Assembly: GCA_025594325.1 (NCBI GenBank)
Contig: JANHCV010000008.1
Location: 310,001 to 374,000 of the forward strand
Direction: 5' to 3'
Length of the DNA: 64,000 nt
Origin: Blastocladiella emersonii ATCC 22665
Lineage: Eukaryota; Fungi; Blastocladiomycota
Every line of letters begins with the position of its first letter. Position 1 is the stretch's first letter. A program made the position numbers and the translations under genes. The notes below the pieces were generated by a model. The model was not told where the DNA came from. It was given only the letters and a program-made list of their open reading frames with translations, and ran no database searches. This document shows, one piece after another, positions 12,421 to 51,266 of the stretch.

Positions 12421-12614
12421 CGGTCCGTGATCGCGCGCACGCGTCGGCACCCACCCGCCACCGCTGCTCCGCCGTTCCCGACGCGCTCGTTCCCCGCCCG
12501 CTATGCGCGACTTGCCCTGATAACCCGGGCGGGAGCGGCGAGAACGCGTCGCGGAGGTCGCGCGGCGGGTGAGTGGGCCGCCATCGGACGCGTGCGCGCG
12601 GTCGCGGATCGCGC
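12421..12614 (+). repeat. Fold-back (palindromic) element, copy 1
   Basis: Left end CGGTCCGTGATCGCGCGCACGCGTC is an imperfect inverse of right end GACGCGTGCGCGCGGTCGCGGATC; inner stem CCCGCCCG/CGGGCGGG; apex TGCCCTGATAACCC at 12513-12526. Confidence 0.85.
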
Positions 12615-13379
12615 TGGGGTTTGGGGTCCATGGTCTGCGGCCGGTGCCAGCGATTGGCGTGAATATATCCTTGCTTGCGAATCCTCCCGCCGACTGGACA
12701 CGTTTGTAAGTCTTGATCACGGCTTGGGCTCTTGGGCGAACGAACGGAAACCAACGAGTCGCAGCGCGAAGAAGATGAGTCCCACGTGCAGCCACGCACG
12801 CCTGTTCGCGTCGCCTCGAGCGCGGCGCGAGCGCGCCCCGCTCCTCGTCTCCGCTCCCCTCGAACATGGATCTTTCGCTCTCGCGGCTCTAGACTTCTTG
12901 CATTTGGTTTCCGGCGCTGCTCGTGCACGGTCGGCGGTCTCAGTCGTCGCTCCGCGCGAGGACTCGTTCTTGTCACTGCACTCCGACACAAGCGCAGTCA
13001 AGGGCGGTCGCGTGCAACTGAATCCCGACAAGCTTTGACATGCGGTTGAACCCGGTACTGCGGTCAGTTGAACACAGCATGCGCGGCCAATCGTTGGCAT
13101 CTTGCCGAGTGGCTGTGCTAGAACACACGGCTGATATTTCGAGCAACTCAAGGCCGCCGCACAACTCGTCGCAGAATCTCGTCGAACTTAATGTTCACCT
13201 GGTCTACGCGCTTGGGTGCACGGTCGGCAAGTCCCGCGCGACATTCGGCGTTGGGCTTGTTTTCCGCCGTCAATTCGCCTTCACACTTCAACGTGTCTAC
13301 CACCAGCACGTTCAACTAAAGGCTCTCCCGCGACGCTTTCCAGCTCCATCAGCACATCGCCACTCTCCGTTCTCCGTCT

Positions 13380-13601
13380 CGGTCCGTGACCGCGCGCACG
13401 CGTCGGCGCCGCTGTACTCCGCCGCCGCGCTCCCGCGCTCGTCCGCGCGTCACTCGTCGTTCCCGGCCGCTATGCGCACGAAACGTGCCCTGATAACCCG
13501 GGCGGGAGCGACAGCCGCCGCGAGCGCAAGAGCGCGTGCGAGGCCGGCGGTCGCGAGTCTGCTGACGCCATCGGGCGCGTGCGCGCGGTCGTGGATCGCG
13601 C
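13380..13601 (+). repeat. Fold-back element, copy 2
   Basis: Same terminal motifs (CGGTCCGTGACCGCGCGCACGCGTC / GGCGCGTGCGCGCGGTCGTGGATCGCGC); apex CTATGCGC..TGCCCTGATAACCC at 13486-13499. Confidence 0.85.
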
Positions 13602-13898
13602 ACGTCTCGAGGTCGGCTATGGGCTTGGTGACATGGGAAGTGGATACACGGAATAGCTTTTATTGCATTGAGGTAGAGGCAGGCTTCTCCGTTGCAGCGC
13701 AGCGAGCGACGATTGCGTGTTTGCACTGAGATCTCACGACGAGACGGCTCGCTTCGGACTGTCAATACAGCTTGTGCACCGCCACGGAGCTGAACATGAA
13801 GTCGCCGCAAGGCGCAGCGCACCGAGGACGGTCGAGCTTTGCCGCTTCAAGCTGCATTCGGCGAACTGCTCAGAGCCGTCGGGTCGACCGTGCGACAC

Positions 13899-13913
13899 GA
13901 CGCGTTGCGCCAC
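13899..13913 (+). promoter_or_regulatory. Recurrent upstream motif GACGCGTTGCGCCAC
   Basis: Also at 16666-16680, and as the reverse complement at 19363-19377, 30563-30575 (13 bp core) and 39857-39870 (14 bp core); mostly upstream of accessory genes. Confidence 0.4.
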
Positions 13914-14196
13914 ATGATTGGTGTGACAGGTCAACGCGCCGCGTCCCCCGTGATGCCTGATTTACGATTTTTGAGATGGATCGCAGCGATCACCATGCTT
14001 CACTCAACGTGGCACGAGAGCCCAAAGTCGAGGCGCGCGACGAACTGGCGATGGACCGCTGCTGATCGAAATCGGTTTCGCTCGTGCGACACGTCTCCCA
14101 CAGCATCACGAGCTCTAGGCATCGGGTTTCCCTCCGATCGAACACGCTCGATGCGGTGGATATCTTTCCTCCTATGAGCCAACATGTAAAGCAATC

Positions 14197-15456
14197 ATGA
14201 AGCTTAGCGACTTTCTGCAACGGCCTCCGTTCGGCGACTGGGCTGCGACGGCGCATGATTACGATGATGCGACGGCAGCCATCGTCCAAGGGATTCACCT
14301 AGCCGGGCTTGCCGCTGCCGTCTTGACTCTCCCGTTCGCGGCTTACGTGGCCTACCACCACTTTGTTCGCCAGCGGCGCCGATTGTTCGCGCCTCGGACT
14401 TCGGACTCGGCTCGCATCAAGCCGATGCCAAACGAGTGCTTCACGGTCGGTTTCCTCGCATCGAATCCGATCTTCATGACCTGGCAACTGCTACTCCTTT
14501 TTGATGTGGGCTCGCCACTCCTGCGCCACTTTCTGCAAAACCTGCGCTGGGTCATTGCCGAAATCGGCGCGATCCTCTACATCATCGGGATCATGTCCAG
14601 CATCCCCACCGGCGCGGCCACGATCGCCAGCGGTATTGCTCAGGAGCAGCTCCCGCGCTGGAAGCAGCTCGTGCTTGCGATCCCGGTACCGAAGCCCAAG
14701 GCCATGAACATCATCATGCTCTACTTTCTCGTCATCCATGTGATCATGATCAACATTATTGCTGTCGGCCTTGGACTTGCTTCAACGTGGGCCGAGGCCC
14801 GTATCTGGCGAGCTGCGCAGTGGACCGGGTGGATGATCTTCACCTTGTTCATCACCGTGTTCCTCGGCCTCTTTGGGCTGCAGCTGCTCGTGATCGTCGA
14901 TGCCAACGAGCGGCACCGTATGGCGACCGTGGTTCCGTCTCAGCCGGAAAGCTTCATGTCGACCAAGTGGGATAGCAAAGCGGTGCACTGCGCGCCTTCG
15001 AACCCGCAAACCATTAAGTCGGCCCAGCTCTCGAGCTCAACAAGCGTGGCGCCACCTTCGAATTCCCGCAGCTCGCGCTCTGGCCCAAGTCATTCGGCCA
15101 GCCAGGCCTCACAGAGTAGCACAAGCAGCGCCGGCCGAACAAGAGCAATCAGCCTCGCGTACCTTCGCGCGCTAGTGATTTCAGTCACGGGCGCGGGAAG
15201 CTCTCACTTGGTCGGTGACGTGCTGACACTTCTTTCGTTCGAGCTCATCTCCAACAACGCGCCAACTTTGACTACGCTGACCAGCGACTGGATGTTCATC
15301 CTCGTCCTGGTCAACCAGATTCTTGTTCCTTCGTTTTTGATGCTCACCTACTTTGTCGGCCTTGCGTACGTCATCAACGTCTCGAATCGGGCGGCGGCCC
15401 TCGCCAGCGTTCCCTCTATGCGGTCGCGCGAGGGGTCGTTCAACTCTCAGCGCTAG
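14197..15456 (+). CDS. Orphan 7-TM GPCR-like membrane protein, paralog 1 (intact, 419 aa)
   Basis: Seven hydrophobic segments, with a long Ser-rich loop between TM5 and TM6; conserved with paralogs at 15670 and 19515 (PFGDWAATAH, KPMPNEC, LRHxLQNLR, ANERHR, DWMF). Confidence 0.75.
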   Translation: MKLSDFLQRPPFGDWAATAHDYDDATAAIVQGIHLAGLAAAVLTLPFAAYVAYHHFVRQRRRLFAPRTSDSARIKPMPNECFTVGFLASNPIFMTWQLLLLFDVGSPLLRHFLQNLRWVIAEIGAILYIIGIMSSIPTGAATIASGIAQEQLPRWKQLVLAIPVPKPKAMNIIMLYFLVIHVIMINIIAVGLGLASTWAEARIWRAAQWTGWMIFTLFITVFLGLFGLQLLVIVDANERHRMATVVPSQPESFMSTKWDSKAVHCAPSNPQTIKSAQLSSSTSVAPPSNSRSSRSGPSHSASQASQSSTSSAGRTRAISLAYLRALVISVTGAGSSHLVGDVLTLLSFELISNNAPTLTTLTSDWMFILVLVNQILVPSFLMLTYFVGLAYVINVSNRAAALASVPSMRSREGSFNSQR

Positions 15457-15669
15457 CCTGTTGCATGTGGCCCTCATTTGTGAATAGAAGCCATGTGAGC
15501 GTACACTCACCGGCACTCTGACGGTGTGCTGCGGCTCGAAGCCGCGTGTTTCATAACACGTGATGTCTCGCATCAAGCTGGGGTGAACAACGCGTCTCCC
15601 GCTCGCTCGCTACACGTTGAAGCACGCGCAAACAGCCTCGCATGTTCCTCGGTTTGCCCCAGACGCAAA

Positions 15670-16601
15670 ATGAAGCTAAATGACTATATGCAACAATCTC
15701 CGTTCGGCGACTGGGCCGCGACGGCGCATGGATTCGATGAGGCGACGGTCGTCATGATCCAGCGGTTCCATTTGGCGGGGTTTGCCGCCGCCGGTTTGGC
15801 ACTACCGTTCGCAGCGTACACGGCTTACCACTACTTTGTTGTTCAGCGTCGCCGACTCTTTGCGCCGCGGGTGTCGAGCTCGGCTCGCTTGAAGCCGATG
15901 CCCAACGAATGCTTTCTTGCGGGGTTTGTCGGAGCCGTACCCATCCTCATGATCTGGCAGCTGCTCGTCTATTTCGACGTTGGCCCGCTCGTTCTGCGCC
16001 ACTGGCTTCAGAACCTTCGTTACGTGATCGCTGCTATGGGCGCGGTGGTTTACATCATTGGAATCCTCTCAAGCATCCCTTCCAGTGCTGCGACCCTTGC
16101 CAGAGGCTTCGCCCAGGAGCAGCTGCCACCTTGGAAGAGGCTCATCTTAGCCGTGCCCGTGCCGAAGCCCAAGGTCATGAACATCATCATGCTCTATTTC
16201 TTGGTCATCCATGCGGTCCTTACCAACGGGATCACGATTGGCTTGGGCCTGGCTACGACATTCGATCTGCCAGTCGGTCGCGGTCGGTCAGTTTGAAATA
16301 CCTTCGCGGCGTGATTCTCGCCGTCAGTGGGTTCAGCGCGGTCCACTTGGTTGGTGACATAATGACGCTGCTCTCGTTCGAGCTCATTCACACGAGTGCT
16401 TCTGAACAAGCGACGTTGACTGGCGACTGGATGTTCGTCCTCATCGCGGTCAATCACATTGTCGTGTCCCCGGCTGCCGCTCTCGCCTACGTTATCGGAG
16501 CCACGGTGCTCGTCGTGGCCTCAAAGTCAAATTCGACTACTCTGTCGTTTCCTCGTTCAAATGCGAAGCAGCCGCCTGTGCCATCGAACCAGGTGTGTTG
16601 A
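15670..16601 (+). pseudogene. 7-TM paralog 2 with internal deletion (TM5 + loop lost) and frameshift
   Basis: MKLNDYMQQSPFGDWAATAH start; after GLGLATT (about 16260) the sequence jumps out of frame to RSVSLKYLRGVILAV (TM6-TM7), which lies in ORF 15909-16601. Confidence 0.75.
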
Positions 16602-17368
16602 AGCCCCCTCGAATTGATAAATAGTTTGTCCAATCACTCGAAAACTTATCTCTGTTCGATCTGAGGACGCGTTGCGCCACACGATGGAAGTGACGGGCAA
16701 GGCGGGTGAGCACTTCCGCCGGTCAAGCCCACTAGAGCTCGAATGCTCCGACGCCCCTTCCTCGCTCCCTTGCCACTCGATGCCACTCAAACCATGTAAC
16801 CTCGGCTCGAATAACTTTGTGCAAACTTATCCTGTGTTTGTGCAATGCACCCTTCCTGGCCGCCGTACCTCGACTGGGCGCTCCGTGCGGTGGTGTCCCT
16901 GACACAGCCCGACTCTTGCTTTGTCTCGCTTCATGGCTGAAATGGAGCATCGGTGCTCAAGTGCAGAGATGCTAATGAGATCCAACAGTTCAACCAGTCT
17001 CGCCGACACATGGACCAATTCCTCATCATTTCGTGCCGGGATGGCAATTCATTTGGTGGGAGGCAAGGCTCCGCCAAGCCCCCTGACCCATCTACTATGT
17101 GAACAAACAGGCCAATGAGCTACATGACTGAATCGAGAATGCCGCGTGCGCCTCTGAACGAGCTCCACCGTCCGTCCACTCATATTCCTCGCACACCCTG
17201 CCTTGTTTGCTTCGTATCGACTTTTACTCGCTTATCAACGCCTCGCGAGGGCATTCGGCGCGAATTTACCGACGGTACGGGTCGGTTTGGACTTGAACCG
17301 CATCGTGTGCCACAAGCTAACCGATTCTGTCCCACCCGCCACTTGGTAGTCGCCGGACTTGCCTGGCT

Positions 17369-17535
17369 CGGTCCATGATCGCGTGCATGCTTCGGCGCAA
17401 CGACCTGCCGCCAGCTTCGCTTCGTGGCGTTCACTCAACGGCTCTCATACGCACTCTATGCTCACACTCGACTTCCCCGTCTGCAATGCGCACGCAACGT
17501 TCCCTGATAACCCGGATGGGCGAGCCGGGCTGCTC
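17369..17535 (+). repeat. Fold-back element, copy 3 (right arm truncated by Helitron sequence)
   Basis: CGGTCCATGATCGCGTGCATGCTTCGG left end; CAATGCGC..TTCCCTGATAACCC apex at 17500-17513; stem CCCGTCTG/CGGATGGG; no right terminal motif. Confidence 0.7.
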
Positions 17536-17559
17536 TCGAGGGTCTGTCTGTGATGGAGC

Positions 17560-18949
17560 CACGGCGCGAAACGGCGGGTTGATCTCGTGCAGGAACGCGT
17601 CGCTCTTGTGGGACTCCTGGGCGATGTCGACGGTCGTGATCTCGCCGTCACACTCGTCATCGTTACCCATGCCAGTAACGCCGGCATGTCGAAGGTGGAC
17701 CTGCTCAGGCGTCACGCTGTTGTCAGCCTCGGAATGCTGCGCGTAGTTCGTCGCGGCCTTGGTGGGCTCTAAGCGACAGCACTGGACAAAGTCGTAGAGC
17801 GAAAGCGACTCGAGCTCGTTGGGTCGGAGCATGTAGTGGTCGGCGATCGTGTCCTTGTCGGTGATCGGGCGGTTCGAGAACGTGATGCGCTCGTCGTCGT
17901 TCTCGTCGTCCTCCTGCTCGAGCTCGCACTCATCGTCGACTGCCCCGGCGCCGTCCTCGACGACGCGCTGCGCGTCAGTCATGTTGCTCGCCGCGTCCGA
18001 GCCCGCCGCGTTCATTACCATGCGCAGGAACTGGTACAGGGGGACGTGGGCGAAGCTGTACGTCGTGTAGACCCACGTTTTCTCGCCCTTGCGGATCAGG
18101 TCGAGCGCAATCTGCTGACCACTGATCCTGCTCGACGTCGTTGAGCGGTTGACGAGGCCGCGCAGAATGGAGCCGACCGATAGCGGGAGCGGCACCGTTG
18201 AGTTGAGCTCGCGCTTGCGCTCGGGCAGCTTCTTGGCGTGCTCGAGGCGGGCGTACGTGTTGTACGAGGACGGCGACAACTTGGCGATGTATATGGTGAT
18301 GTAGTAGATGACGTTGGCGGGGGTGTCAGGCCGTCATGAAGAGGTTCTTGATGTCCACGCTCGAGGCCAGGAGCGAGGCCGGAGCGCGACGATGGTCGGT
18401 GTACCTTGAGGTCGCCCGTTTCGGGATCTGGCACGATCTTGCTGCGCGCGACCACGCTGAGGAGCTTGTTGTTCTCGAGTGCAGTGTCTCAGTTGAAGCC
18501 ATGAGGTTTGTATTGAGTTGAGCTGCAATCACGGCGAAAACGAGAAGCGGAGAACAGGATCTCATGATCCCTTCAGAACTCTGTGAAACGCGAGAGAACT
18601 GACGCGGGAACGACTCAAAAGGAAGGCAATCTAAACAGATAAACAGTCAAAGAAGTGAATTTGCGATCGTGATGAACGCGAGGGCAGGGAGGAGGGCGAA
18701 AGGGAGAAGTAGACCAAATCGGTCGGGACTCCACAGGATGATGCTCTATCTATGGTGCTTGCCTTGTTGCATAGAGTAACAGGGTAGATTATATTAGAGG
18801 ATTTAGAGAAAATTGAGGAGACAATAATTCGAGCGCGACCGAGACGCGTCGCGACGCGTCGTGATTGAAGTGGCAGGAGGTCAGGCGCCCAAAAAACCCC
18901 AGCTTGAGCGCGAATTCAGCTCGACAGAAACTCAGCCTACTGCTGAGAA
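17560..18949 (-). mobile_element. Helitron2/Helentron derivative A: 5' terminus plus Rep C-terminal fragment, 3' end missing
   Basis: Helitron Rep-region motifs PDPETGDLKVHR, VDIKNL, NVIYYITIYIAK, DHYMLRPNELESLSLYDF; 18765-18949 is the reverse complement of the 5' end of the element at 32234 (TTCTCAGCAGTAGGCTGAG...). Confidence 0.75.
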
Positions 18950-19164
18950 CCAATACACCCGCGCCAACGACGCTATCCACTGATTTCATGTTCGTGCTCA
19001 CTGCGGTCCATCATGTTGCGATGACCCCGCTTGCCGTGCTCGCCTACTTTGTTGGTCTCACGATCGTGGTCGCAGCCTCCAATCCTCCGCCAACGTCGGC
19101 TCCAGCGCTCTCTCGTGCCACATCAGGGCGGTCGCGGACGAATTCCATTCACTCTAACGGCTGA
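18950..19164 (+). pseudogene. 7-TM paralog 3, 3' remnant (TM7) cut by the Helitron 5' end
   Basis: TNTPAPTTLSTDFMFVLTAVHHVAMTPLAVLAYFVGLTIVV aligns with TM7 of paralogs 1, 2 and 4 and starts exactly at the Helitron terminus. Confidence 0.7.
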
Positions 19165-19514
19165 TCTTCAACAAATAGCTCGGCTCGGATGTGTATCTTC
19201 CGATTTCTCGGGCAGAAATGGAATCTTTTTGAATGCACATCGTCGTTTTGTCCGGAAGAGTTATTCACACGTGAGCGCTCATGAGGGCGCCAAGTGCTCG
19301 GAAGCAGAAGTGGCCGCGCGATCGTCGCAGCCGCGTGTCTCGCAACACGTGATGTTTCACGCGTGGCGCAACGCGTCCACCTGAAAATGCGCCACGCGGC
19401 TTGATCACACCCTGTCTCCCACGGCGCCGCGCATCGCGCTGCAACAGTTGACCACCCGAAATATGCATCGAGTGAACTCACTGACATGGAACCATACGAT
19501 CATATGCCACTACC

Positions 19515-20759
19515 ATGCAACTATATGACTTGCTGCAAATTGCTCCCTACGGCGACTGGGCCGCGACCGCACATGCACTGGATCGGGAGTCTTCGGAGCT
19601 GCTACGGCAGTTCCATCTCGTCGGGTTCGCCGCGTGCATGCTCGCCCTCCCGTTTGTGAGCTTCACGGCGTTTCATCAATTCTACGTGCAGCGCCGCGGA
19701 ATCCTCGCGCCGCGAAGCGCGGGATCGGTGCCGTTCAAGCCGATGCCGACCGAGTGCTTCACAGCGGGATGTCTCGCTTCTATGCCGCTGTTCATCGCTT
19801 GGCACCTGTTGCTGTACCTTGATGTCGGCCCGATACTCCTGCGTCATTGCCTTCAGAATCTGCGTTATGTGGCCGTCGGATCCGGCGGGGTGCTGTACGT
19901 CGTCGGGATCCTCCTGAGCATCCCGTCCGGCGCAGCGACCATCGCCAGCGGGCTCGCGCAGGACAAGCTGCCACGATGGAAGCGGCTCATCCTTGCCGTC
20001 CCGGTTCCGAGCCCCGATTTCATCAGCCTCGGCACGGTCGTCTTTCTCTCAATTCACATTCTCGCGTCTTGCGCAATCATGATCGGCCTCGGTCTCGCAT
20101 CAACCTGGGCCGAGGCCCGCATCTGGCGAGCCGCGCTGTGGACCGGGTGGATCATTGTCACCCTGCTTCTCGCTCTCCCGCTGGGACTCTTTGGCGTGCA
20201 GCTGCTCGTGATCATCGACGCGAACGAGCGGCACCGTATCGCGACCGTTGTACCGACAAGGCCGGAGAGCTTCATGGTGATCAAGGAAGAGAGCGCACCC
20301 ACACAGATCGGGAATGAAACGGCAAATATCAAACGGTCGGCCTACACGCTGGGCGCACAAAACGCGGTTGCGATTGCGAGCTCGAGCTCGCAGATTGTTC
20401 GACCCTCAACTGACCAGCTGGGCGTTGGGTCCAGGCAGAGCAACAACACGGACATCAACACGGCCTCGCGCCGGGTTCGCTCCATTGGGCTCCAGCACTT
20501 GCGCTTCGTGATCGCGGCCGTCGTTAATTTCTCGTTTGTTCATGCCTTCGTGGACACGATCACCATGGCATCGCTCGAAAACATGCACGCCGGCGCATTG
20601 CAAGCGGATGTGGTCGCCCGCGACTGGATGTTTATTATCTGCGCCGTGAACCATATTGTGGTGGGCCCGGTCGCGCTGTTGGGCTTCTTTGCCATGTTCA
20701 CGCGCGTCATCATGATCTCGACGCGGTCCCGAGTCATGTCTAGTTTGTCGCTGACGTGA
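19515..20759 (+). CDS. Orphan 7-TM GPCR-like protein, paralog 4 (intact, 414 aa)
   Basis: MQLYDLLQIAPYGDWAATAH start, the same motif set and topology as paralog 1. Confidence 0.75.
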   Translation: MQLYDLLQIAPYGDWAATAHALDRESSELLRQFHLVGFAACMLALPFVSFTAFHQFYVQRRGILAPRSAGSVPFKPMPTECFTAGCLASMPLFIAWHLLLYLDVGPILLRHCLQNLRYVAVGSGGVLYVVGILLSIPSGAATIASGLAQDKLPRWKRLILAVPVPSPDFISLGTVVFLSIHILASCAIMIGLGLASTWAEARIWRAALWTGWIIVTLLLALPLGLFGVQLLVIIDANERHRIATVVPTRPESFMVIKEESAPTQIGNETANIKRSAYTLGAQNAVAIASSSSQIVRPSTDQLGVGSRQSNNTDINTASRRVRSIGLQHLRFVIAAVVNFSFVHAFVDTITMASLENMHAGALQADVVARDWMFIICAVNHIVVGPVALLGFFAMFTRVIMISTRSRVMSSLSLT

Positions 20760-21122
20760 ATATAGTGCGTTAAACATTACAGGCTTGCGTGCGGATTCTT
20801 AACAGTTAGCTCGATGCAAGGGCGTGTTCGCCGTTGCGGGGGACTACCGCTTCTCACTGCACTCGAGCGCGAAGGATGGTCAGCGAATGAGTTTGACCTA
20901 CGCGAAACGAAAATGACCTTCTTGGGCTCGGAAAACGTTTGCGTGTGACCGAACAGCGAACAGGCAACGTTTGCAGCCGCGTCGAAGTGCACTGAAGCGG
21001 GCGCTTTGGCGAGCGCGCCATCCATCTCCGCGTGACTCACGCGACCGTCAGTCTCAGAGTTTAGCGCACGGATCGACTTGCTCTCGCCCCTTCGCTCCTT
21101 CTCACCCCACTCGCATGAAAAC

Positions 21123-22284
21123 ATGGAACAACTTGATGCAAAGAATGTACAACCGCCGTCTTTCAAGGATATGCTTGTCGCCGGGTGCCACTGCGCCGGA
21201 AAGTGTTCCCCGCTCGCTCGCCACTTCCAGCAGCTCGCTGTCTCAGGCGACCAATCGGACATAACCATCTCGGTGCACGGCATCAAATATGCGCTGCATC
21301 GTGCCGTGCTCGTTCGGAGCCCGTACTTTGCTGCGCTCCTCAACGACGCGTAGCACGTACCAGTCGACGGCGCGGCGCTCCAGCTCGACTTTTTGCTTGC
21401 AGATGCGGAACCGGAAGTTCACGACCACAACGATCGAGACGAAACTTGTGACAACGCTCGCAGTGTCGTGGCTTCCGACGAAGGCGACGATGAGTGTGTT
21501 CGACACTCAGCTTACCCAGGCGTTCGCGTCCCCTTTTGCAACTCAAAACCCGGCGTTCCTTGCCAGCGTTCGCGCAGCTGCGTTTGACGTGTTTGCGTTA
21601 CGGTCGGCCGTGCTTGCGGCTGACGAGGACGACGAGTGTTTGATGGAATCCGGTTATCCTCGGCCGCTCGAAACGCCCGAAGTTGTGGTTGATTGCGGCG
21701 CATTTGCTGTGTCCAAGGCTTTGGGCCAGATCGCTGGCGAGTGCAACAGTAGCAACACAGTGGATGCGCCGGCCTCTGGCCGACGCTACCGCCTGCGGGT
21801 TCCGTTCAAACTTTCCTTTGCCATTGGGACGAACCCAGACTATGCATTCCCTTCCATCTTCTTTGGCGGACGGGCGTGGTCGGTCAGGGTCACTGCTGCT
21901 GGCGAAATCCACTTGCACGTTTCTTTCGTTTCAACAAGCCGATTCGCTGAAATGCTGACTAATTGATCCGGGCAACGTAGCGGCTCCGTGAGCACCGAAT
22001 CACCGCCTGACCCAGTAAATGCCGCCGTGGCACCGTATGAAGATCCCCGCATTACTGTGCTGTAACGTGTGTGCTTCATCGCGTACCCGCTTACTAGCGT
22101 CGCGCAAATTCTGTACCCGGCTGAGATCGGCGCCTCTAACATGGCTGAGGCGGACGAATTTACCTGGGACGAGCCATCCGCACTCGCCAATGACGCACAC
22201 TGGACCCACAGGATTCATCGCAACCTGCCGCTCGAGGAAGGGAAAGTGGTGTTGCGCGGAATGGTCCTGCCCGAGCTGCTGTGA
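21123..22284 (+). pseudogene. BTB/POZ (germ cell-less-like) protein, copy 1, disrupted
   Basis: SDITISVHGIKYALHRAVLVRSPYFAALL BTB motif; premature TAG at 21351-21353 where copy 2 has TGG; internal deletion; ends VVLRGMVLPELL like copy 2. Confidence 0.7.
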
Positions 22285-22639
22285 TGCATCGTGTGACGAT
22301 ACATATCATTGGGTTTGACGCGCTGTGACTCCATTTCTATCTCTTTGTGTGCACGAGTTGATCTGCAGCACCCTTGAGCGAGACCGCCAAGACGCGTGCT
22401 CTGAGGGGCTCAAGCGTTGAACAGCAATCCGTAATATGACAGGCATCGAAAATCTGGACAGATCGGACTCACATTGCGTGCACGCTGATCGGAGCGTCCA
22501 AAGTCACCGAACAGACGCGCTGGTCACTTGCGCGTGATCAGCGTACCTGGTCTGTCGGGCGGTCGCCGCGCCGCCTTCGTCCTCCCTCCCTCTCCACCCC
22601 GTTGAAAACCTTGACTCGACTCAAGACTCTATGCATCGT

Positions 22640-32233: not shown

Positions 32234-33549
32234 TTCTCAGCAGTAGGCTGAGTTTCTGTGGAGCTGAATTCGCGCTCAAGCTGGGCCATTTGGCACGCCT
32301 GACTTTTCTGCCACTCCCATCAACACGCGTCGCGACGCGTCTCGGTCGAGCTCGAATTATCTTCTCCTCAATTTTCTCCAAGTCCTCTTAATATATCTAC
32401 CCTCTAACTCTATGCAACTCAACTAAAATCGTCTGGGGCACAGTTCGACGTCGGAATACTCTCCGTGTACCTGACCTCTCACTCTTCCCGCTCCTCCCGC
32501 GGCCACTGTGCATATCCTCTACATTTCCTCCGTCCTTCATCACGGCGCAGAACTCGGTGCGCGACGCGTGGAACTCGATGGCCGCCGCGAAACACGCGCG
32601 TCGCCTCGGTCTCCAACCCGACGAAATCTTTGACCTCGAGTGCGTCGATCTCGTCCGCAGGCCCTCCACAACCGGACCACTCCTTTGGCGGCAGCTCGTC
32701 ATTGAGAGCAGCGGTCAGAGCGAGAGCGACCAGCGCATGCTCAACTTCGCAAAACTGCTTCCCTCGAGCAAGACGGACCACATCCCGTCTACCCTCAAGC
32801 TGTTTGCTGGCGCGCGTGTCATCGTGACGCGGAACATCAACACGCCGTACGTCTCCGCGTCATATTCGCCGGCCATTAGGCGCGTGGACTCACCAGCGCT
32901 TCCTCGCTTCGCATTGTGTAGTCGCGGCATCGTCAACGGCGTCATTGGCCGTGTTGAAGGCTTTGCCACCGACGCGAACAACGACATTGATGCAGTCATC
33001 ATCCGGCCCAACAAGGACCTGGGTCGCATGCCCAAGCTACCCGGGATCCCCGACGGCTGCTTCCCGCTGCGCCGCGAGATCGCCTCGTTCCGCCTCAAGA
33101 ACAAGGTGGCCGGCACATCCAAGACGATCCATCGAGCCCAGTTCCCGCTCGAGCTCGCGTACGCGCTGACGGCGCACAAGGCCCTAGGGATGACCCTCGA
33201 AAAGGTCATCGTTGATCTCGCCGACATGACGCGTGGATCGTTACCGTCGCGCTTCCTGTACATGATCCTATCGCGTGTACGGCGCGGTGACGACATCCTG
33301 ATCCTGCGTGATCCAGGTATCCAAGGCCTGAATCAAACGCAGGATCAACATTTACTTGCCGAGTACGCTCGACTGCAAAGTCTGGCGGAGGCAACCACTA
33401 CCTAGTCCTTAGCTCATTAATACATAGCGATTTTGACACGTCATTCACTACTCGCCTTTCAACGCGGACGGAACTTGACGTCCAGCATATTTTCAAGTCA
33501 GCCTAGTCGCCTACTGCTGAGACAGAGTGTGCAAAGCACACACCCCTAG
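32234..33549 (+). mobile_element. Complete non-autonomous Helitron2/Helentron (about 1.3 kb) with both termini
   Basis: 5' TTCTCAGCAGTAGGCTGAG (hairpin CTCAGC/GCTGAG); 3' subterminal inverse GCCTACTGCTGAGA at 33509-33522; stem-loop GTGTGC-AAA-GCACAC 33527-33541; CTAG at 33546-33549; internal PIF1 helicase fragment. Confidence 0.85.
32557..33405 (+). CDS. PIF1-family helicase C-terminal fragment carried by the mini-Helentron
   Basis: LKLFAGARVIVTRNI, GIVNGVIGRV, RAQFPLELAYALTAHKALGMTL, YMILSRVR; in-frame 75 nt GTACGT..TGTAG intron about 32847-32921. Confidence 0.8.
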   Translation: MRDAWNSMAAAKHARRLGLQPDEIFDLECVDLVRRPSTTGPLLWRQLVIESSGQSESDQRMLNFAKLLPSSKTDHIPSTLKLFAGARVIVTRNINTPYVSASYSPAIRRVDSPALPRFALCSRGIVNGVIGRVEGFATDANNDIDAVIIRPNKDLGRMPKLPGIPDGCFPLRREIASFRLKNKVAGTSKTIHRAQFPLELAYALTAHKALGMTLEKVIVDLADMTRGSLPSRFLYMILSRVRRGDDILILRDPGIQGLNQTQDQHLLAEYARLQSLAEATTT

Positions 33550-38980: not shown

Positions 38981-39049
38981 GAGAGTATGTGATCCGTCGG
39001 GATCTACTCGCTCGATCGTTCATTGAGGCTTTCACGGTTACCGATATGG

Positions 39050-41184: not shown

Positions 41185-41339
41185 TGCATGAAGTTCATTC
41201 GTTGCATCGACGGGAATCGTAGAGACTGGAAGGACCGAGGCGAAGAGGCGCCGTGGCGGCGAGCGACCCGTGGGAATGGGGCGCACGTGCATATGAACGG
41301 CGCGTCCAGGGGCCGCGGGAGCACCCTTGACTTAAGTCA

Positions 41340-42200: not shown

Positions 42201-42299
42201 GATGTATATACGATGTATTCGAGGGTTTGTGTTTAGAGTTGACAACAGACACGGGTTGGGGCTGCAAGCGGCGCACTGGATGTAAATTGCGTGCCGCGG

Positions 42300-43313
42300 T
42301 CAAAGCAACAGGTCTCGTAGATGGTCGGCGAATTTCCTGAACAGGACGATGCCGAACTTCAGGAACTTCTTGTCGCCCCTAGCCATCCACGCCATGTTGT
42401 CGGCCTTGATCGACTCAATCTGAAGAGCGTCGGCCCACTCGTGATAGTCGCGAATGAAGGCCTGGTCGCTCGGCTTGTTCGCATCCAACAGCAAGGCGAG
42501 GAACACGGAGTGCCGGTCGAACTTGAATTTACACATCATGTGGATCGCCATCTCGCGCAGCTCGCGCTCCTCGGGTGTAAGCGAGGACGGGAGGAGCTGC
42601 TTCAGCACGCTGGAAGTGTCCACGGTGGACGCAGGATTTGACGTCTTCTCCATCATGGCCAGGAGCAACGCGATGCGAAGACAGCTGATAAAGTGAGAAC
42701 TGGTGTCATCAGGCCCAGACCATTTCGTCTGGGCTGCTGCAAAAACTCTGTGCTCAAGCTCCTCGGTTGTCAGGGTCCACGCGGCACACGTGTGAAGAGT
42801 ACCCGGCGTTCCCGTCACTGGGTCGGCCACGAGGACTTTCTCGGCAGCGGTCAAGCAAATATCGAGCGCGAAAGGCGTGGCGACCTCCGATGCTGCCCGC
42901 TCATTGGCAGCCGCAGAAATGGAGTTGCTAGTCGATCCAGTCTATGCGGGCACATCATTAAGGAGCGGTTTCATGAGTTCTGGAAAGCGACGTACAGTTT
43001 CCTGAGCTTGGCGTAAACCGCTTTGCGTGACGGCGCTTCCAGTAGCCGTGGACCGCGCGGCCTTCCACTGCGCGTACCGCACGACGTTGGCGCGGTGCAC
43101 AACCGACTTCTTGTGCCGGCGAAGGCGCTCGGTACGGAAGTGCACGCCGCACGGACCACACCACTCGTAACCGTTGCCCGACTCGAAAGCGGGCGGGAGG
43201 TCAGTGGGTGGCTTCGCGGGCGGGTTGACACGGCGCGCGGGCGAGTCGAGCCACTCGCGGTAGTGTTCTTTGGGGTTCGGTGCATCCATTGCAGGGAGTT
43301 GAGTAAGATCCAT
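42300..43313 (-). CDS. Cassette gene D/E, copy 2 (zinc finger exon + helical-domain exon)
   Basis: MDLTQLPAMDAPNP...WCGPCGVHFRTERLRRHKKSVVHRANV, then GTACGT intron to exon ORF 42300-42854 (CLRIALLLAMMEKTSNP; compare CIRIATLVIMMEKASNP). Confidence 0.6.
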
Positions 43314-43701
43314 GGATTGCGCTTGGCGGCAACTCGGGGAGAAAAGTGACCAAGCGTGAGCAGCAATGAAGCGCTCTGCCGGAACTGACAGGCGCCTGAG
43401 CCTCATAAGTGAGGCATGCGCCACACGAGGCATGCGCCACACGTGAAGTGAGCGCCGCGTCACACGCGGCAAGACGGGGCCACCTAGTGCTCCGTCGTAG
43501 ACAAAAGTTTCCTTCTGAAGGTTTAACAACCCCGTTCGATACTTTCCGAGGGAATGAATGCGTTTTGAGCCAACTTTGGGTGCAGCAGCTTGAAAACAAC
43601 CCGTGAGCCTGCAAGCTTGCTGGCGTGTGCAGCTCATTCCTGTACTAATCGGACTCCTCCCGCGGGTTCTCCCACTTCTTACTAATGCATCCGTCCGAGG
43701 T

Positions 43702-46700
43702 TTATTCTTCGGTAGAACTTTCAAGATAAGTAGGAAACAAGGGAAGCAGGAGCCCACGCTTGAGCTCGCCCCTCAGAACGGCAAATGCCGCGACGCTGGC
43801 CGCGGCCTCCGCTTCGGCCTTCGGGCCGATAAACGGGAACTTGTTAATGTCCGGCAGCGATCGATCGACCATGACTGCGTGGCTGTAGCTGAGGTACTCG
43901 CCGACGGACTCCGCGTGAGGGCCAAGTCCAGCACGGAATGAAATCGTCCGCCCACATGCGTGAAGGTACACGGCCTCGGCGATAACAACGACTTTTCAAA
44001 GCTTCTGTACGGCAGCACGCGCAGCGGGCGACTCCGACTTGGGCGGGAGAGGCGGGACATAGACGTAGCTGATGTCAAGAGAAAGCGAAAGTCCAGCGGA
44101 TTTGCCTTGCGGCGGTAGCACAACAGGCCGGTTGAAGAAAATGACGGCCACCACGCCTCGTGAGCCGCCGCCTTCGAGCTTGAGCACGCATGCATTCTCG
44201 TGCTTAAAAACGAAGTTAAGCAAGTGAAAGTAAACGAACTTGAGCCCCGTTGCGTGCCACGCCCCGGCTTTGCCTGGAGGTGGTGGGCCCTCTGGAATTG
44301 GGCAGCGACTTGTCACAAGGGGCCATTCCTCGCGCGTAAACATAGCTCCAAAGGCCGAAAACGCGGCTGTGAGAATGAAGACCGATTCGGGGCAGACCCG
44401 ATCAGGGATAGGGAACGCTGCAAATCGAGGAATCGGCGGACTGAGGCCAAGGACGGGTACGACAACGAACGGTGCCTTGCGCACGGACACAGCAATGCGA
44501 CGCAGTTTGGCATCGACCTTGGCGCTCGTCGCGATACCTGGGCATGGTAGCTGGTAGGTACAGACTTTCCCGTCAACGAGGAGCGTGAGGCGCCGCGGTA
44601 TTGCGCGAGGTCGCGTTCCGGCACAAGTTTGACCACGGAATTGCTGCGACTGCGGGGCAAATCGAGAATAAGCTCAAGCTGCTTCCCGTTCAGATCGAGA
44701 ACGCTGGAGACCGTGAGACGCGTTGGAGAAGCACGAGCGGAAAGGTTTGCAGTCGCTGCATACGACATAATACCGCGAAGTGCGGCCTGCATGTCCTCGA
44801 TGGAGACTGGCGTCACAAGCAAACATTTGGAGTCTTCGCCGCCGCTGAGAGAAAACAATACCTCGTTACTGATGCAGATCCACTCGGCCTCGTTATCAAA
44901 AGCTTCCCGTTGATCAAGAGCAGGTCGAGCTCAGAGCGAGAAGCGAAAGTTGGCCTTGGGCTCAACATCGCGCTGGTTCATGTACCATACAACACTGACG
45001 GTACCGTTGATTTCGTCAAGCGCGTGTCGAACCGCGTGAAACAGAGTGCGATCGAGACCATTGGTACAGCCAATGCGGGTGACTGAAGTTGGATGGATAT
45101 TAGGAAGCAGCGAAAAGGTCGCGCAGAGCTGCAAGATGGGCGGAGCAGCTTGATTGTCAAAATCGAAAGCAAAGCCGTGGGCCCGAGCGTACAGGCCACG
45201 CTCCGAGTTAGAACTGTTGATGAAGCCAATCTCGCTCAAATCCCGATCAAGCAGCTCGATGTCGCCGCACGGCCAGGGAAGCAAAGTGTACGGATCTGCC
45301 GCAGACCACACAAGTCGCCAAGAAGCGAAAGCGTACGCGAGAAGCTTTGGCGCAAACGTCGCGGTCGTGAAGGTTCCGCCTATGTTTCTGGATGTTAGTA
45401 CGGCGCTTGTTTTGTCTAATGTGCCAACGTACCAAGTGTAAACCGGTCGACATCGCGCTGTTGATCCAAAGTAAGGATAAAGCGGACAATCATCTTCCAC
45501 AAGTAGTCAGATCCGGGACCCAGCAACGCGATCGGCGCGTCGGCTGCACTCACCTTGCAAAAAGTGCTCCTGCGGTGAAGCAAGGTTCCACGGGATTTGA
45601 TCCTATTCAAAGAAACGGGCCGGGCGTGGGCCGTCCAATGTTCGTGATCAAGCGGCCGGTTCTCCCAGAGCGTTACGCCAAAAAGTGTGAGCAACGCGGG
45701 GAGAGGGAGATTGTATCGGACGTTTAAGGACTCGGCGATCGAGGGAGCTACAGTACTGGCTGTTACCGTTTCGATCATGAGAAGCAGAGACCGGTCAAGC
45801 GCCAACGAGTTGTTGTACTTGAGGAGCGCAGACCCGTGCAAAAGAAGATTTAGATCGCCGCAACGGTCGGCCAGCGTGGAAGTGTCGACCACATCGAAGC
45901 GCTGACCGGGGTCTGCGGCAAGCTGCTCCATGACCAGGACCGCGTCGCCAAGAGCGAAAGTTATGCGAGCTCGAGTGCCGTTGGCTCCATCCGGGACGGG
46001 CCGCAAAGTGTCCGTCAGCGCCTGCACCCACTCCTTGACCTGACGCAACATCGACCTGTCGATGGGCTCCCGTGTCACGTCCACGTAGAATCCAGTTGAG
46101 GCCGGCGCGATGATCTTGATTTCTCGCGAGGTCGCACCGTAAAAGGTCAGGTTGGGAAAGCGGTCCATTTGCGTGCACCGAAAGTACTCGTTTGACTCGA
46201 TCGTGCGGTCGATCCAACAAAGCCGACGCGCCTTAACCGCAGACCCAACCTTGTATTCCGAGTCAAAGAAGACAGCTGAGGTGGTACGGCCGACCAAGAC
46301 CTCGCGCACGGTGCGCCGACAATGGGCGCAGTCAACGTCTGTGCAGTCCAAGTGCGGCTTCTCGACGCTCGTAATTTGGGGGTGCTCGAGCGCAAGCGAG
46401 TCGAGCAGCCGCGCGCGGGCGGTCGCTTGCTCTGCCAATGTAGGAAGGGAGTCACCACGCTCGAGCCAGCGAATCCAGCACTCTCGAACAGCATACAGAG
46501 TCGCATTGTCAAGGACACGGACCGGCGACGTGGGAGAGAGCCAGTCAAAGTCGATGCACTTGCGCAGCTGTTCCAGTAAGAAGACGTGACAGGGCAGTTC
46601 AATCTGTTCCGAAAGCCAGAGTTGGGCGACCATGAAGTAAAAGAAGGTCACGCTGTGGCTCCGGACAAAGCATAACCGCGTGCAAGATGAGAAGCGAGCG

Positions 46701-46994
46701 AGCCATCGGCTCTGGGCGTAAGTCGTTGAGGGTAAAGGACATGGCGGCGCGCGAGCCTTTGCGCTTCGCCTCGATGAGCGCGTGCGCGACCGAGCGCAAG
46801 TCGTGAAAGCCGCACAGCAGAGCATCAAGTTTGCGACCGTCGTTGCTCTCGTTGTGGTAGAGGAAGACGTCGGCGGCGCACGAGTCGCGGAATGGATCGA
46901 AGTGCTCGGCTGGGTCGGTGAGCAAAATCGACGCGCTCGTCTGCGCAGGCATAAATTCGAGCTCCGCTAAGTCCATTGCAGTAAGTTGCTTCAT
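43702..46994 (-). pseudogene. DUF4470 (fungal MYND-associated family)-like gene broken by frameshifts and stops
   Basis: ALLCGFHDLRSV...FTLNDLRPEPMARSLLIL and RFDVVDTSTLADRCGDLNLL match remembered motifs of fungal DUF4470 proteins; spread over ORFs 46599-46994, 45416-46828, 44931-45500, 44313-44858, 43996-44490 and 43702-43971. Confidence 0.65.
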
Positions 46995-47173
46995 CAGCTT
47001 TGCATGGAGTTAAGTGGTGAGGGGAGGAGGGATGGAGGCAAGGGAGGCGCTGCGTTTGGCGACCGCGCAAGCGGCCCGCGCGATAAGCAACACGTGTTTT
47101 CGGAACGCGTCTCACGACTCTTCATGCCCGCTGCGCCGCCCGAGCCTGAGCATCGATGGCCTCCAGAGTGCAC

Positions 47174-48770
47174 TCAGAATAAGGCTCAGTAAATTTTACT
47201 TGAACCACCTAGACGCTTCGCGTCTGGTCTTCAATCGAGGGCTAAAGCCTTCCGCCACGTTGGAGCTTCGGCTCACACGGGATACCTTTGTCCGCTGAAA
47301 GTCCTGCGAGAGTTTCGAGGCTCGTCTTGGCTCGATCGTTCCCTGCTCCTTCATCATCAGCTGTAAACGAGTGTTCGTACGCGAATCGAGCGGGCGGCGC
47401 AGCTCGTTGTACGCCAGCGGTTAATCGTAGAATGAGTCTCGCGCGGCTTCGTGTAACACGGGTAGCTAGAAGTGCAGCCTGTCGTTCACTTGTGGTACCT
47501 GAAAATGGTCGCCGACGAAAGTTACGATGCAGCCGCCGACCAGCTCGTCGCACCGCCGTAGCGCCCGAAGACTCGCGTCAACACGCCAGATCGTGCAGTA
47601 CGTGTTGAGCCATCAACTGATCAATTCATGCTGCAAAACAAACGTACCCAGCGGCGAGGTCGACGACGTGGACGGACGGACGTCAGGTGTTGCGCTGGCC
47701 AAGTTCGTGGTCGCGTCGTCGTCAACATCCGTGGCGTTGGAGGACGTACTTATTTACTTGCGACGCGGCGCCCGTCTCGGGCGCGATGAGCGACGATTAC
47801 GCGGCCATGGTGGCAGCGCAGACGGCCATGACCATGGTGGCGGTGCAGACGGCCGTGACCATGGTGGCGGTGCAGACGGCTGGCGGTATGTCAGCCTTAC
47901 TGCGCTGGCGGTACTTGCCCAGGATCTCGACGGCCACGAGGTGGTGCGATACGAACTTCTCGTGCCACTGGGTACGGCCGCACGTAAAATGTGCATGACC
48001 CTGGTCTAATGGCGCGAAACATAGCGAGAGGACCACCTCGTCGGTCAGACAGGAGCTTCACTGTGCCGTCGTGCGAAGGAGCCCGACGAGTCACAGCAGC
48101 TCGTGCGCGTGCAGAGTATGCCGCGCCTGCCCCTCCTCGGCAATGAATAGGCGCGCGCGTCGCCGAAAACGCCAGGCTTGTCTGACGCGGCGCCTTAGTC
48201 GAACAGCCGGCCGAACAGGTACTTGACGATGAGCCCGCGGTTGTGCAAGCGCCGCGCGGCCTGCAAGGTCGGTTTTGTGCTCGCGACTATGACGGAGTTC
48301 GAGTGCGTCGCCAGCTGCTCGCACGACATGTTGAGCGCGGCGATCATGCTCGCATCGCGGTACTGCCGGTCGCCACCGTCTACAGGACACGCCACAAGTT
48401 CCGCCGGGTCGCCGCCGCACCAGAAGTTTAGCGCCAGTGAGTTGTTCGGGTTCGGCGTCAACGTAAAACAGACGTGGGGGAGGCCGAACCGCCGCACTAT
48501 GGCCGTGACGCGCTGGCCAAGGTCGTGTCGCTCGCCTTTGCTGCCCCAGAAGTTGGTCGACGACGTAGAGAGTTCGCTCAGCGTACCGAGAGCCGCGATT
48601 GGCCGTTGCCTGAGTTCTGATCCGGGAACGCCGCGATGTGCGCTCCCTCGAAATACCGTATGCCAGGCCAACGCCGACTGCAAGTTTTCTGTCGCGAGGT
48701 CGGCGGCCGTGGTCGCCAAGTTGGGGCTGAGCGCGCAAAGTCTACCGCGCTCCCATGATTGATGCACTTC
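47174..48770 (-). mobile_element. Helitron derivative C: Rep HUH domain and helicase remnants, with a candidate 3' subterminal repeat
   Basis: VRRFGLPHVCFTLTPN (Helitron_like_N), GVFG, EEGQARHTLHAHELL* (HUH motif at 48103-48111); RVDASLR...GGCIVTFVGDHFQVPQV (PIF1 motif III, 47482-47600); GIPCEPKLQRGGR; GCCTTATTCTGAG at 47186-47174 resembles the 3' subTIR. Confidence 0.75.
47805..47880 (+). repeat. 27 bp tandem repeat, about 2.8 copies
   Basis: CCATGGTGGCGGTGCAGACGGCCRTGA units directly adjacent, with no spacers. Confidence 0.8.
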
Positions 48771-49667
48771 AAGCTTTGCGGGCCGTGCGGGACGTAGGGC
48801 TACGCGCGGACAGCAACCAAGGCCTGTCCGAGTTTCTAGGCAAAGGAGCAGAGACGGGTGTTTAGAGAACCCAATGTCGGTCGGAGGTGCGTTGCTTCAA
48901 GCTCTTAACTGTTGGGCACGGGTGTGAGCACAGCCAAATGGTGGTCGGGGGGGGGGAGGAAAGAATAGGAGCGAGGGCGAGGGACGGTGCGTGGCCGAGT
49001 ACGGGACCAGCCACCGCATCGAGCGCGCTGTCCGTTACTGTTCGTTAACGTGGTGTTACCGTTGCCCGTACTGTTCGGACAAGTGGCAAGGCTACATGAA
49101 CGCGCACAGCCCGCACTGATCATCGGCCTGTTGCGCGTCCGTCCCTTCTCGATCTTCTTCATGTGTGGGTGGTCAAGCCCTCACCCGGAATCGCTCAAGA
49201 CTGTCATCACGCTCGCGAGCTCCACAACAACACGCGCGAACGATGAACGAAGCTTCACGCTCGCTCGAACATGATCGAGCGTCGCGAGCCTCCGCCACTC
49301 ACGCTCGTATGAGGGCCTCGAGTTGAATGACGCGGTTCGTTCGCGACCAACGCGACGGGTGCGCCACGCACCGCAAACGCCGAAGCGCAAAACCAGCCGA
49401 AGCGTCTGCGGTGAACAGTAGAACCGGCGCACGTGACGAAAACCAGCGGTGCAAAACCGCGCGCCCAGCCACCCACGCGCGCCGCGGCGCCACGGCAGCA
49501 GGCAAGGACCAGGGCAAGGACAGCAAGCGCTCGCTCCGCCCTCAAAACCGCCCGCTCGCCCCGCCCGCCCCCGCGTCTGCTCGCCCGGCATGTAGAGTCC
49601 GTGCAACTCAACTCGCGCATTGCTCCGACCCGATACCCGATACCCCTCGCACTGCACGCGCTACGCC

Positions 49668-49916
49668 ATGGCCCATGGAGACCAGTCCGCCGCCTCCTCG
49701 TCTACCGCGCCGGCCGCGGACCCGCTCAACAACCTTCCTGCGTTCGGCGACATCGCGCCCGCAACGCACGGCGACGGCGACCTCAACGACGTGCACGAGG
49801 GCGAGGGTCTGTTCCACCTGATCGGCGAGTCGACGGACGGCTGGAGCCTCGCCGAGCTGCCCGAGTCGGCCCACTCGTGGTTGTGGTCCGACTACGACTC
49901 GTCGCAAGACGCCTAG
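49668..49916 (+). CDS. Small acidic hypothetical protein (82 aa)
   Basis: Host-like codon usage, CGCCATGG start context; no domain recognised. Confidence 0.3.
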   Translation: MAHGDQSAASSSTAPAADPLNNLPAFGDIAPATHGDGDLNDVHEGEGLFHLIGESTDGWSLAELPESAHSWLWSDYDSSQDA

Positions 49917-51027
49917 GCCAAGCGCAGGCGCCGATTAAGAACCTGCGCGCCGGCCCGCTCGCCATCATGCGTGCCCGCGCCCGGCTCTGCGCCGCGCCGC
50001 GCCCATCTGCGCGACCGCGCGCGGCGTCCGTGCTCATCCGGCGCTCAACAAGTCCACGCTCGTCTCGCGCTCGTCCCGCCGACTCGTTGCAAGTTCTTCT
50101 CCATCAAGTCCTAACCGCCGTCGAACACATAGTCGGCGGCGGTTCGGCGTAGTCACCCGTTCGTCTCCGTTTCTGTACATTTTGCACACATAAACCAGTT
50201 TCTTGACCAACGGACGGACCGAAGGCAGCGCTTGAATAGCACTGCAGCGCGTTGCGTGCACAAGAAGGTCGGTGAGTAATCCGAGGGGAACGCCGACTTG
50301 CTCGCCGTAGTAGCGTTCTTCGTTCGAAGCGTTCGGCTTCCGCCGATCGGCAACGTGATGGTGACTTGGGTCTGCGGGGAAAGAAGGCCAAACACGCGCG
50401 GACCGTCCTCGCTTCCTTGAACCGACGCCGCTTCCATGTATCTTGACCGCGCCGCACTTGCTACTTGTTGCAAACCGTTGCCTTGAACACGTTGACACTC
50501 TTGCCGGCGGCTGCGGGCGCCGCGCTGAGTTTGAGTGCCACTCGTAGATGCGGCGCCCTGCTGTTTCGGCGCTACTGCAGGCGCGGGCGCGGGCGCGTGG
50601 AGAGGAGTACATGATCCCGTCACCCACAGCGCGTGCCGATCGCGCTTCGCAGTCATCTTGTCGAAGTGCGAGCTGAGCGCGCCCACACGCGGCTCGTCGC
50701 GCCGTGCTTATTCGCGCCGCGGACGACGAGTGCTTCGAGCCCGCTACGCGCGTGCATGCAGCCCGTTACTCGAGACAGTTCCTCGCGTGCTTGACTTCAT
50801 CCTGTTTAAGATTCAGTGCCAATGCGTTGATGGCGTCGTCCTCGTCCTCGCCATCGCCCTTTTTCTCGTCTGGAAGGATCAGGCGGACCGTGTGCAGCAA
50901 GTGAACGCAAACTCGATCTAGTGTTCCAGCGCTTGCACAACACGTTCTCACTGCCATGCCCCGCCTGCTACGCTCACGCTAACCATCGAATCGAAACCGA
51001 TTGGCCGCCGAGCCCGCAATCAGAGCA

Positions 51028-51266
51028 GTCCGCGACCGCGTGCACGAGTCCTTTGGCGTAGCTGCTTATCTGCACGCCCTCCCCGCGATAGCAACATCGT
51101 CGACGACCACGCGTTGCGCCCATCTCTCGCGCCTGGGTTATCAGGGCACATATTGCACGCGTAGCATGCGCGAGAGACGAGCGCGCGGTGGTTGCAACGA
51201 CGAAACTGGGCGAGGAGAAGCGTAGATAGCAGGTGCGTCGACGCGTGCACGCGGTCGCGGGCCGGG
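51028..51266 (-). repeat. Fold-back element, copy 4 (inverted orientation)
   Basis: GTCCGCGACCGCGTGCACGAGTC ... GACGCGTGCACGCGGTCGCGGGCC; inner stem TCTCTCGCGC/GCGCGAGAGA; apex GGGTTATCAGGGCA at 51135-51148. Confidence 0.85.

Follow-up and report, generated by a model that had tools for sequence, protein, structure and literature searches.

Blastocladiella emersonii ATCC 22665 carries a dispersed family of fold-back elements, four of which lie in the 64,000-nucleotide stretch of DNA analysed here (contig JANHCV010000008.1 of assembly GCA_025594325.1, positions 310,001 to 374,000 of the forward strand; hereafter the window). The elements fold upon themselves through a terminal helix and, in the main subfamily, an apical helix that bears a loop with a GATAAC motif. 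In both helices, base pairing is maintained on a single strand, namely the one with GATAAC, and this is also true of copies that have remained in place since old segmental duplications. We favour, from sequence comparison and at a little less than an even chance, the reading that this is a lineage-specific family of transposon-derived hairpin RNA constrained on one strand. The origin of the family would probably be a fold-back transposon, and the simplest candidate for the constrained molecule is a hairpin of RNA, with transcription in the sense of GATAAC. A protein that binds double-stranded RNA, or one of the RNase III/Dicer type, may for instance now recognise the terminal helix and apical stem-loop in their RNA form, and the arms would be loose spacer only.

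Two covarying helices in a dispersed family

The family reaches far beyond the window. In the 32.65 Mb genome of 21 contigs, the 14-mer of the apex was matched 22 times with at most one mismatch (once by its reversed control), the 27-mer of the left end 29 times with at most three mismatches (reversed control, 0), and the right-end pattern, which also picks up the left end on the opposite strand, 109 times with at most three mismatches (reversed control, 7). The end and apex motifs, for which a genome-wide search had been proposed in a sequence-only reading of the window, are therefore far above chance, and the family spans the genome. From the pattern matches 65 loci were retrieved for checking. 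Nine short copies served to build a model of the element (R1; 193 positions, 42 pairs). With it, 32 complete copies plus the truncated one were confirmed in a first set and 13 further copies in a second; one more was recognised by eye, so that about 47 copies have been checked by model or eye. This census points to a total of about fifty or more copies, spread over at least 14 contigs, and is a lower bound, as it comes from pattern searches. Copies are 165-345 bp long, are clustered in lower-GC, repeat-rich islands, and are intergenic both in the window and in the ~210 kb around other copies. Plain BLAST with a single copy as query recovers only about 12 of them.

The family appears to be undescribed, as the sequence-only reading supposed. 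Rfam 15 returned no match at E up to 1 for window positions 12000-18000, which hold copies 1-3, and a literature search found nothing on Blastocladiella hairpins, small RNAs or miniature inverted-repeat transposable elements (MITEs). Exact-pattern scans found the end motif absent from public metagenome contigs and, with the apex motif alone, gave no match in viral contigs. The 21 apex-motif matches in metagenomes were dismissed as chance, being unrelated sequence with no hairpin ends nearby.

Structurally, the strongest feature common to the copies is a terminal helix that is GC-rich and 25-26 bp long, with CGGTCCGYGAYCNCGCGCACGCGTC as its 5' half. Conservation falls off sharply immediately outside CGG, and beyond this point a weaker inverted repeat continues for ~6-20 bp, longer in a few copies. 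A long outward extension of the palindrome, convincing in global alignment, proved by local alignment to be mostly GC-rich noise; only ~20 bp of it are real in most copies, and more in L020, in L036 and in copy 4 of the window. The two arms, of ~30-130 nt each, are rich in insertions and deletions and can be aligned between copies near the apex only. In the main subfamily, the apical helix comprises 8 model pairs, or as many as ~17 in the consensus, and its conserved, asymmetric loop of ~25-35 nt consists of CTAYGCGC, a variable stretch, and then GCCCTGATAACC. It had been thought that an outer motif and a central loop are all that the copies share. Both are indeed common to them, and so are the apical helix and some adjoining arm homology. 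The apex does not hold as a family-wide invariant, however: CCTGATAAC-like centres, including variants such as ...AACGC, ...TTAAC and ...AAAGC, occur in 33 of the 46 checked copies, and the other 13 retain the family ends around different centres. One symmetric-end subfamily, with CGATCC at both ends and the apex variant CCCTGATAACGCGGGCT, comprises four copies at C5:858-867 kb (L059, G000:C5:857500-867499) and one at C1:790.7 kb (L060, G000:C1:789500-792000), and may be closest to the ancestral form. A palindromic-centre subfamily keeps the family ends and carries a small centre of approximately CGAGAGTCGCGTCTCTCG in place of the GATAAC loop.

The two helices covary. Covariation was measured on a model-based alignment of 33 rows against 500 shuffles, a null that ignores relatedness among the copies: standard pairs fill 92.4% of pair cells (87.8% in shuffles), and both-sided changes are found in 21 of the 42 pairs (10.4 in shuffles) or, counted by cell, 77 times (24.3 in shuffles), with none of the 500 shuffles reaching any of these values. 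When the partner column is slid by 1-3 columns, pairing drops to 26-48%. The terminal helix, with 26 pairs and 94.6% of cells paired, shows compensatory change in 13 pairs, and the apical helix in 5 of its 8. RNAalifold, run on a plain MAFFT alignment, arrived independently at these two helices and found compensatory change in 17 of 35 pairs. Among the ungapped ends, 9 copies have G-C at terminal-helix position 13, 8 have T-A and 7 have G-T or T-G, and A-T and C-G also occur there; positions 4, 7, 8, 10, 17 and 24 likewise alternate between standard pairs.

Pairing on one strand and in old duplicates

The pairing of the helices is specific to a strand. With orientation set by the GATAAC motif, independently of folding, the GATAAC strand gave the better RNA fold in 19 of 21 main-subfamily copies (Wilcoxon p = 2e-5), the mean fold energies being -133 kcal/mol for it and -124 for the opposite strand. 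The main subfamily holds 220 G:T versus 86 A:C arm-to-arm mismatches. Within the two helices the excess is 141 versus 31, and it persists when three near-fixed wobbles are removed (74 versus 27) or when each column is counted once (24 versus 7, p = 0.003). In the variable arm interiors there are 98 G:T and 44 A:C mismatches, where 59% would be expected from base composition alone.

The GATAAC strand has more T than A, and so do the 30 nt that flank the element on each side; this excess dies away within ~100 bp. The 30 nt that follow the element are T- and G-rich on this strand, with runs of at least three T in 21 of 38 copies and runs of at least three A in 3 of 38, and the 300 nt preceding it are C-rich. 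The T- and G-rich stretch is counted in favour of the RNA reading. A polymerase III terminator after the element was considered and rejected, as runs of four T occur in just 2 of the 38 copies. The T excess inside the elements and in the 30 nt around them would suit the view that these are functionless palindromes, in which gene conversion or arm copying keeps the similarity and a local, one-stranded bias of mutation from C to T gives the G:T excess, so that they matter only as fragile sites seeding rearrangements; several copies do lie exactly at duplication borders or in tandem arrays. We consider this quite improbable. The T excess fades too soon, blocks of 25 bp are poor conversion substrates between dispersed copies, and arm copying should homogenise the arm interiors too, yet these pair weakly. 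In fact, the sequence-only reading described the arm interiors as self-complementary in each full copy, which is true of a few copies and weakly so in most: against shuffles, the mean RNA-energy z over 23 copies is -1.6 (p = 2e-4 as a set), with -0.5, -2.8 and -7.3 for window copies 1, 2 and 4. An alignment-based measure of arm complementarity agrees roughly with these values.

Old duplicates show which parts are held in place. Several copies lie inside old segmental or tandem duplications, the alignable flank blocks of which are 67-79% identical. Identity in seven old duplicate pairs is 88.5% for the terminal helix, 78% for the apex block, 60% for the arms and 52% for the flanks under global alignment; the copies were collected through conserved motifs, and their conservation is partly biased thereby. 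However, high helix identity is also seen in duplicate pairs found via the apex alone, so that the helix value is not due to this bias of collection. Where the duplicates differ at paired positions, both sides have changed in a compensatory way in 5 cases, and single changes have preserved the pair 23 times and broken it 20 times.

Transposon, single-stranded DNA or RNA

Fold-back MITEs are non-autonomous DNA transposons that consist almost wholly of inverted repeats, and they are known sources of hairpin RNA. Like them (for example the Mutator-derived and Tourist/Stowaway-type families), the present elements are short, non-coding, palindromic and dispersed, sit in repeat-rich regions, and form subfamilies with differing interiors and common ends. 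The main rival to the hairpin RNA is accordingly that the family is an ancient non-autonomous fold-back MITE, with ends of 25-28 bp as transposase sites, subfamilies that arose by internal change, and copies that are now immobile and decaying. This is possible, if on the unlikely side. The dispersal of about fifty copies over at least 14 contigs and their clustering in lower-GC islands speak for it, as do the truncated copy, the variation in length, the near-perfect symmetric ends of one subfamily, and the terminal inverted repeats of 25-26 bp in all copies. That unrelated centres have these ends in common is itself typical of MITEs.

Traces of transposition were sought. Exact matches and mean identity were both scanned at every fixed offset of 0-40 bp and for lengths of 2-10 bp, with flanks of different copies paired as controls, and neither revealed a target-site duplication, nor did inspection of the best-preserved copies by eye; this null, which agrees with the earlier inspection of the window, carries some doubt from old age and uncertain true ends. 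No autonomous partner was found either: end matches with at most three mismatches pair within ~350 bp or stand alone, with no longer element between them, and as the search covers ends of that similarity a more diverged partner is possible. A search for empty sites, with one locus and its flanks against the genome, returned filled paralogues only. Arm resemblance between copies is confined to places where the flanks are duplicated as well, so that, unlike fold-back MITEs, the family has no near-identical burst subfamilies. Additionally, a terminal helix that is 88% identical in old duplicates with drifted arms and flanks is unexpected for dead insertions, and with the drop of conservation just outside CGG the most conserved block may be subterminal. 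A binding site in duplex DNA would also leave the G:T excess of one strand unexplained; pairing on one strand only and ends conserved in old in-place duplicates set the family apart from such MITEs.

The sequence-only reading had proposed a single-stranded DNA (ssDNA) or RNA structure, possibly recognised by the HUH Rep of the Helitrons in the window. A single-stranded hairpin, whether RNA or ssDNA, does fit better than an ordinary MITE, because of the covariation of the helices, the strand-specific G:T excess, the helix kept in duplicates and the missing target-site duplication. The part concerning the Helitron Rep found no support. The Helentron and Helitron pieces of the window have no match at hairpin loci other than that of the window (65 loci searched; ~45 copies with 210 kb of flanks), and therefore the nearness of copy 3 to a Helitron is an accident of the island; no resemblance was seen between Helentron ends and hairpin ends. 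An ssDNA hairpin, the apex of which would be recognised or nicked by an HUH enzyme such as the nearby Helitron Rep, or by another single-strand transposition system, is very improbable to us. It would agree with the pairing on one strand, G:T being also the best-tolerated mismatch of DNA, and a strand-specific hairpin, a conserved loop (here the asymmetric apical loop of the main subfamily) and the want of a target-site duplication are features of Helitron/Helentron ends and of the HUH hairpins of IS200/IS605 ends and rolling-circle origins. However, HUH-recognised hairpins measure ~15-40 nt and the present ones 200-300, and the apex motif, and with it the loop, is absent from a quarter of the copies (13 of 46 with ends). 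The Helitrons of the window have no sequence in common with the hairpins and do not co-occur with them elsewhere. There is no recent mobility in the family, and conservation in place after duplication is unexpected for a sequence that serves transposition only.

The hairpin RNA, in comparison, would belong beside the hairpin RNA (hpRNA) and microRNA (miRNA)-like loci, such as the plant MITE-derived MIRNA genes, the animal hpRNAs and the fungal miRNA-like RNAs (milRNAs). Like these, the family has long imperfect hairpins in which one or two duplex segments are conserved and the rest varies, tandem clusters of paralogues, and a genome with Argonaute genes. Four Piwi/Argonaute loci, at 298-308 bits, were found (G000:C17:1404132, C17:1586553, C11:2504843 and C20:476549), and these four Argonaute-type genes are counted as support for the RNA reading; two of them score identically and may be a recent duplicate. 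The present stem, in contrast to these loci, is very GC-rich, and their precursors have no such conserved, asymmetric loop of 25-35 nt. Another resemblance is to the bacterial palindromic repeats (REP/BIME, Correia/NEMIS, RUP, ERIC), which are also intergenic, dispersed and palindromic with conserved ends; these act at the RNA level, and their origin from mobile elements is debated. The host here is eukaryotic, and the element is much longer. To our knowledge, neither a processing enzyme nor a transposase has been described for the hairpin family.

Several findings weigh against a constrained RNA. The symmetric-end subfamily, that is the C5 cluster with the C1 copy, has no G:T excess (20 versus 20), so that part of the asymmetry may stem from one founder. 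The 13 copies with family ends and other centres are a classic sign of MITEs moved by one transposase, and the pairing of the arm interiors hardly exceeds that of shuffles. Relatedness among the copies, which the shuffles ignore, and the collection of copies through conserved motifs count against it as well. The RNase III domain gave one weak match of 31 bits (G000:C1:2959876) in an exon-by-exon search, which an intron-split Dicer may escape. Elsewhere in the genome the conserved 25-mer lacks targets, which speaks against a miRNA-like guide, and Rfam gave no match for window copies 1-3.

The hairpin RNA may be carried one step further. The roughly fifty elements would then be transposon-derived long-hairpin-RNA genes under purifying selection, with the sequence-specific 25-bp terminal duplex and the conserved apical loop as their working parts, acting as substrates of RNA interference or RNase III or as protein-binding RNAs. 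This we consider unlikely; hairpin RNAs of such build, in an early-diverging fungus, would be new.

Genomic setting and significance

All four elements claimed for the window are present, and copies 1, 2 and 4 are of full length (Table 1). Their positions hold, and the palindromes overrun the bounds first given to them. In copy 1 a weaker outer inverted repeat extends to 12402-12630 (inverted repeat I1, with 44-nt arms), and in copy 4 the palindrome probably reaches 50960-51323, because an outer 18-nt inverted repeat lies on the axis of the core (I1, I2 and I3 share one axis). Copy 3 is without the right arm and the right half of the helix. Against model R1, copy 1 scores 138 bits on the forward and 41 on the reverse strand, and copy 4 scores 83.9 on the reverse and 37 on the forward strand. 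The whole-element DNA folds of copies 1, 2 and 4 have z values of -3.1, -2.5 and -4.6 against shuffles. GC content ranges from ~57 to 74% along the window, and the four copies sit in its lower-GC, repeat-rich part.

Table 1. Coordinates of the fold-back elements and of other features named in the text (window positions unless a locus is given)
Feature	Position	Strand	Basis or remark
Copy 1, full fold-back element	core 12421-12611	+	sequence, fold, model R1, inverted repeat
Copy 1, terminal helix, 5' half (CGGTCCGTGATCGCGCGCACGCGTC)	12421-12445	+	alignment of copies
Copy 1, terminal helix, 3' half	12587-12611	+	alignment of copies
Copy 1, apical stem	12492-12535 overall	+	12492-12500 with 12526-12535
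Copy 1, asymmetric loop	12501-12525	+	
Copy 1, apex motif TGCCCTGATAACCC	12513-12526	+	final base inside stem
Copy 2, full element	13380-13598	+	model R1 (97.6 bits), inverted repeat
Copy 2, apex motif	13486-13499	+	
Copy 3, truncated	17369-17535	+	sequence; weak R1 match 17418-17573, 38 bits
Copy 3, left helix half	17369-17393	+	retained, with left arm
Copy 3, apex TTCCCTGATAACCC	17500-17513	+	
Copy 4, inverted, full length	core 51026-51264	-	fold, model R1, inverted repeats
Copy 4, apex motif	51135-51148	-	
Helitron piece	17560-19164		
Mini-Helentron	32234-33549		
Promoter-like module	~52026-52060	-	
Promoter-like module elsewhere	L005/L031		~900 bp upstream of hairpin
Promoter-like module elsewhere	L024, L001		180-240 bp downstream
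Palindromic-centre subfamily copy	L061:1207-1402		
Palindromic-centre subfamily copy	L061:2353-2611		
Palindromic-centre subfamily copy	L071:1012-1270		
Palindromic-centre subfamily copy	L072:812-1052		
Palindromic-centre subfamily copy	L075:1072-1342		

The copies have no neighbour in common. Searches of all flanks with blastn and tblastx found no shared neighbouring gene or 1-kb upstream unit and returned neighbouring hairpins and segmental duplicates only; the seven-transmembrane (7-TM) gene family of the window is not in the flanks of other copies. An upstream coding-like open reading frame (ORF), where seen, lies ~670-1,800 bp away, mostly 670-1,140 bp, and downstream ones lie at 74 to ~2,000 bp, with no rule of orientation or distance relative to neighbouring coding ORFs. 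A promoter-like module, composed of GAGACGCGTCGA, 2-3 bases and AATCATGTGA (an ACGCGT box and a CACGTG-like box), was considered as a part of the element and set aside, being near 6 copies only; it has the look of a promoter motif in general use in this genome. The elements themselves could be read as a regulatory module of double-stranded DNA, in which ACGCGT-type boxes at the ends and a TGATAA (GATA-type) centre are selected as transcription-factor sites. ACGCGT stands in GACGCGTC-like words at both ends, which resemble the module near several loci, TGATAA is present in the apex, the blocks are conserved in place, and all copies are intergenic. Even so, this is improbable. Sites in duplex DNA predict neither compensatory changes from end to end nor a G:T excess of one strand, and the elements have no fixed distance or orientation to the neighbouring genes.

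In gene-family islands, several copies sit at the edges of segmental and inverted duplications, and tandem arrays of hairpins are found on chromosomes 11 (L036, C11:1,262-1,265 kb), 20 and 5. On chromosome 6, a large inverted segmental duplication (G000:C6:946.7-949.5 kb versus 1028.9-1031.6 kb; L013/L014 and L078-L081), 74-77% identical, contains a 341-amino-acid ORF (L014:250-1275), and its outer ends coincide with hairpins L013 and L014. Nested and likewise inverted, L032 and L033 (975.1 and 996.6 kb of the same chromosome) have the inward flanks alone in common. Also on this chromosome, L072 (G000:C6:362800-364900) and L073 (G000:C6:392300-394400), with one hairpin copy in each, are 100% identical over 2064 bp, inverted and ~29.5 kb apart, which points to inverted duplication in the very recent past or else to an artefact of the assembly.

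Should the elements be merely old MITEs, the result would be an ordinary one, and the copies at duplication borders in gene-family islands would still be useful. If they are made as RNA and selected, they would represent a rare multi-copy family of structured non-coding RNA from the deep branches of the fungi, and a case of a transposon turned into RNA genes. Strand, helix and loop are all defined, so that a clear experiment is possible.

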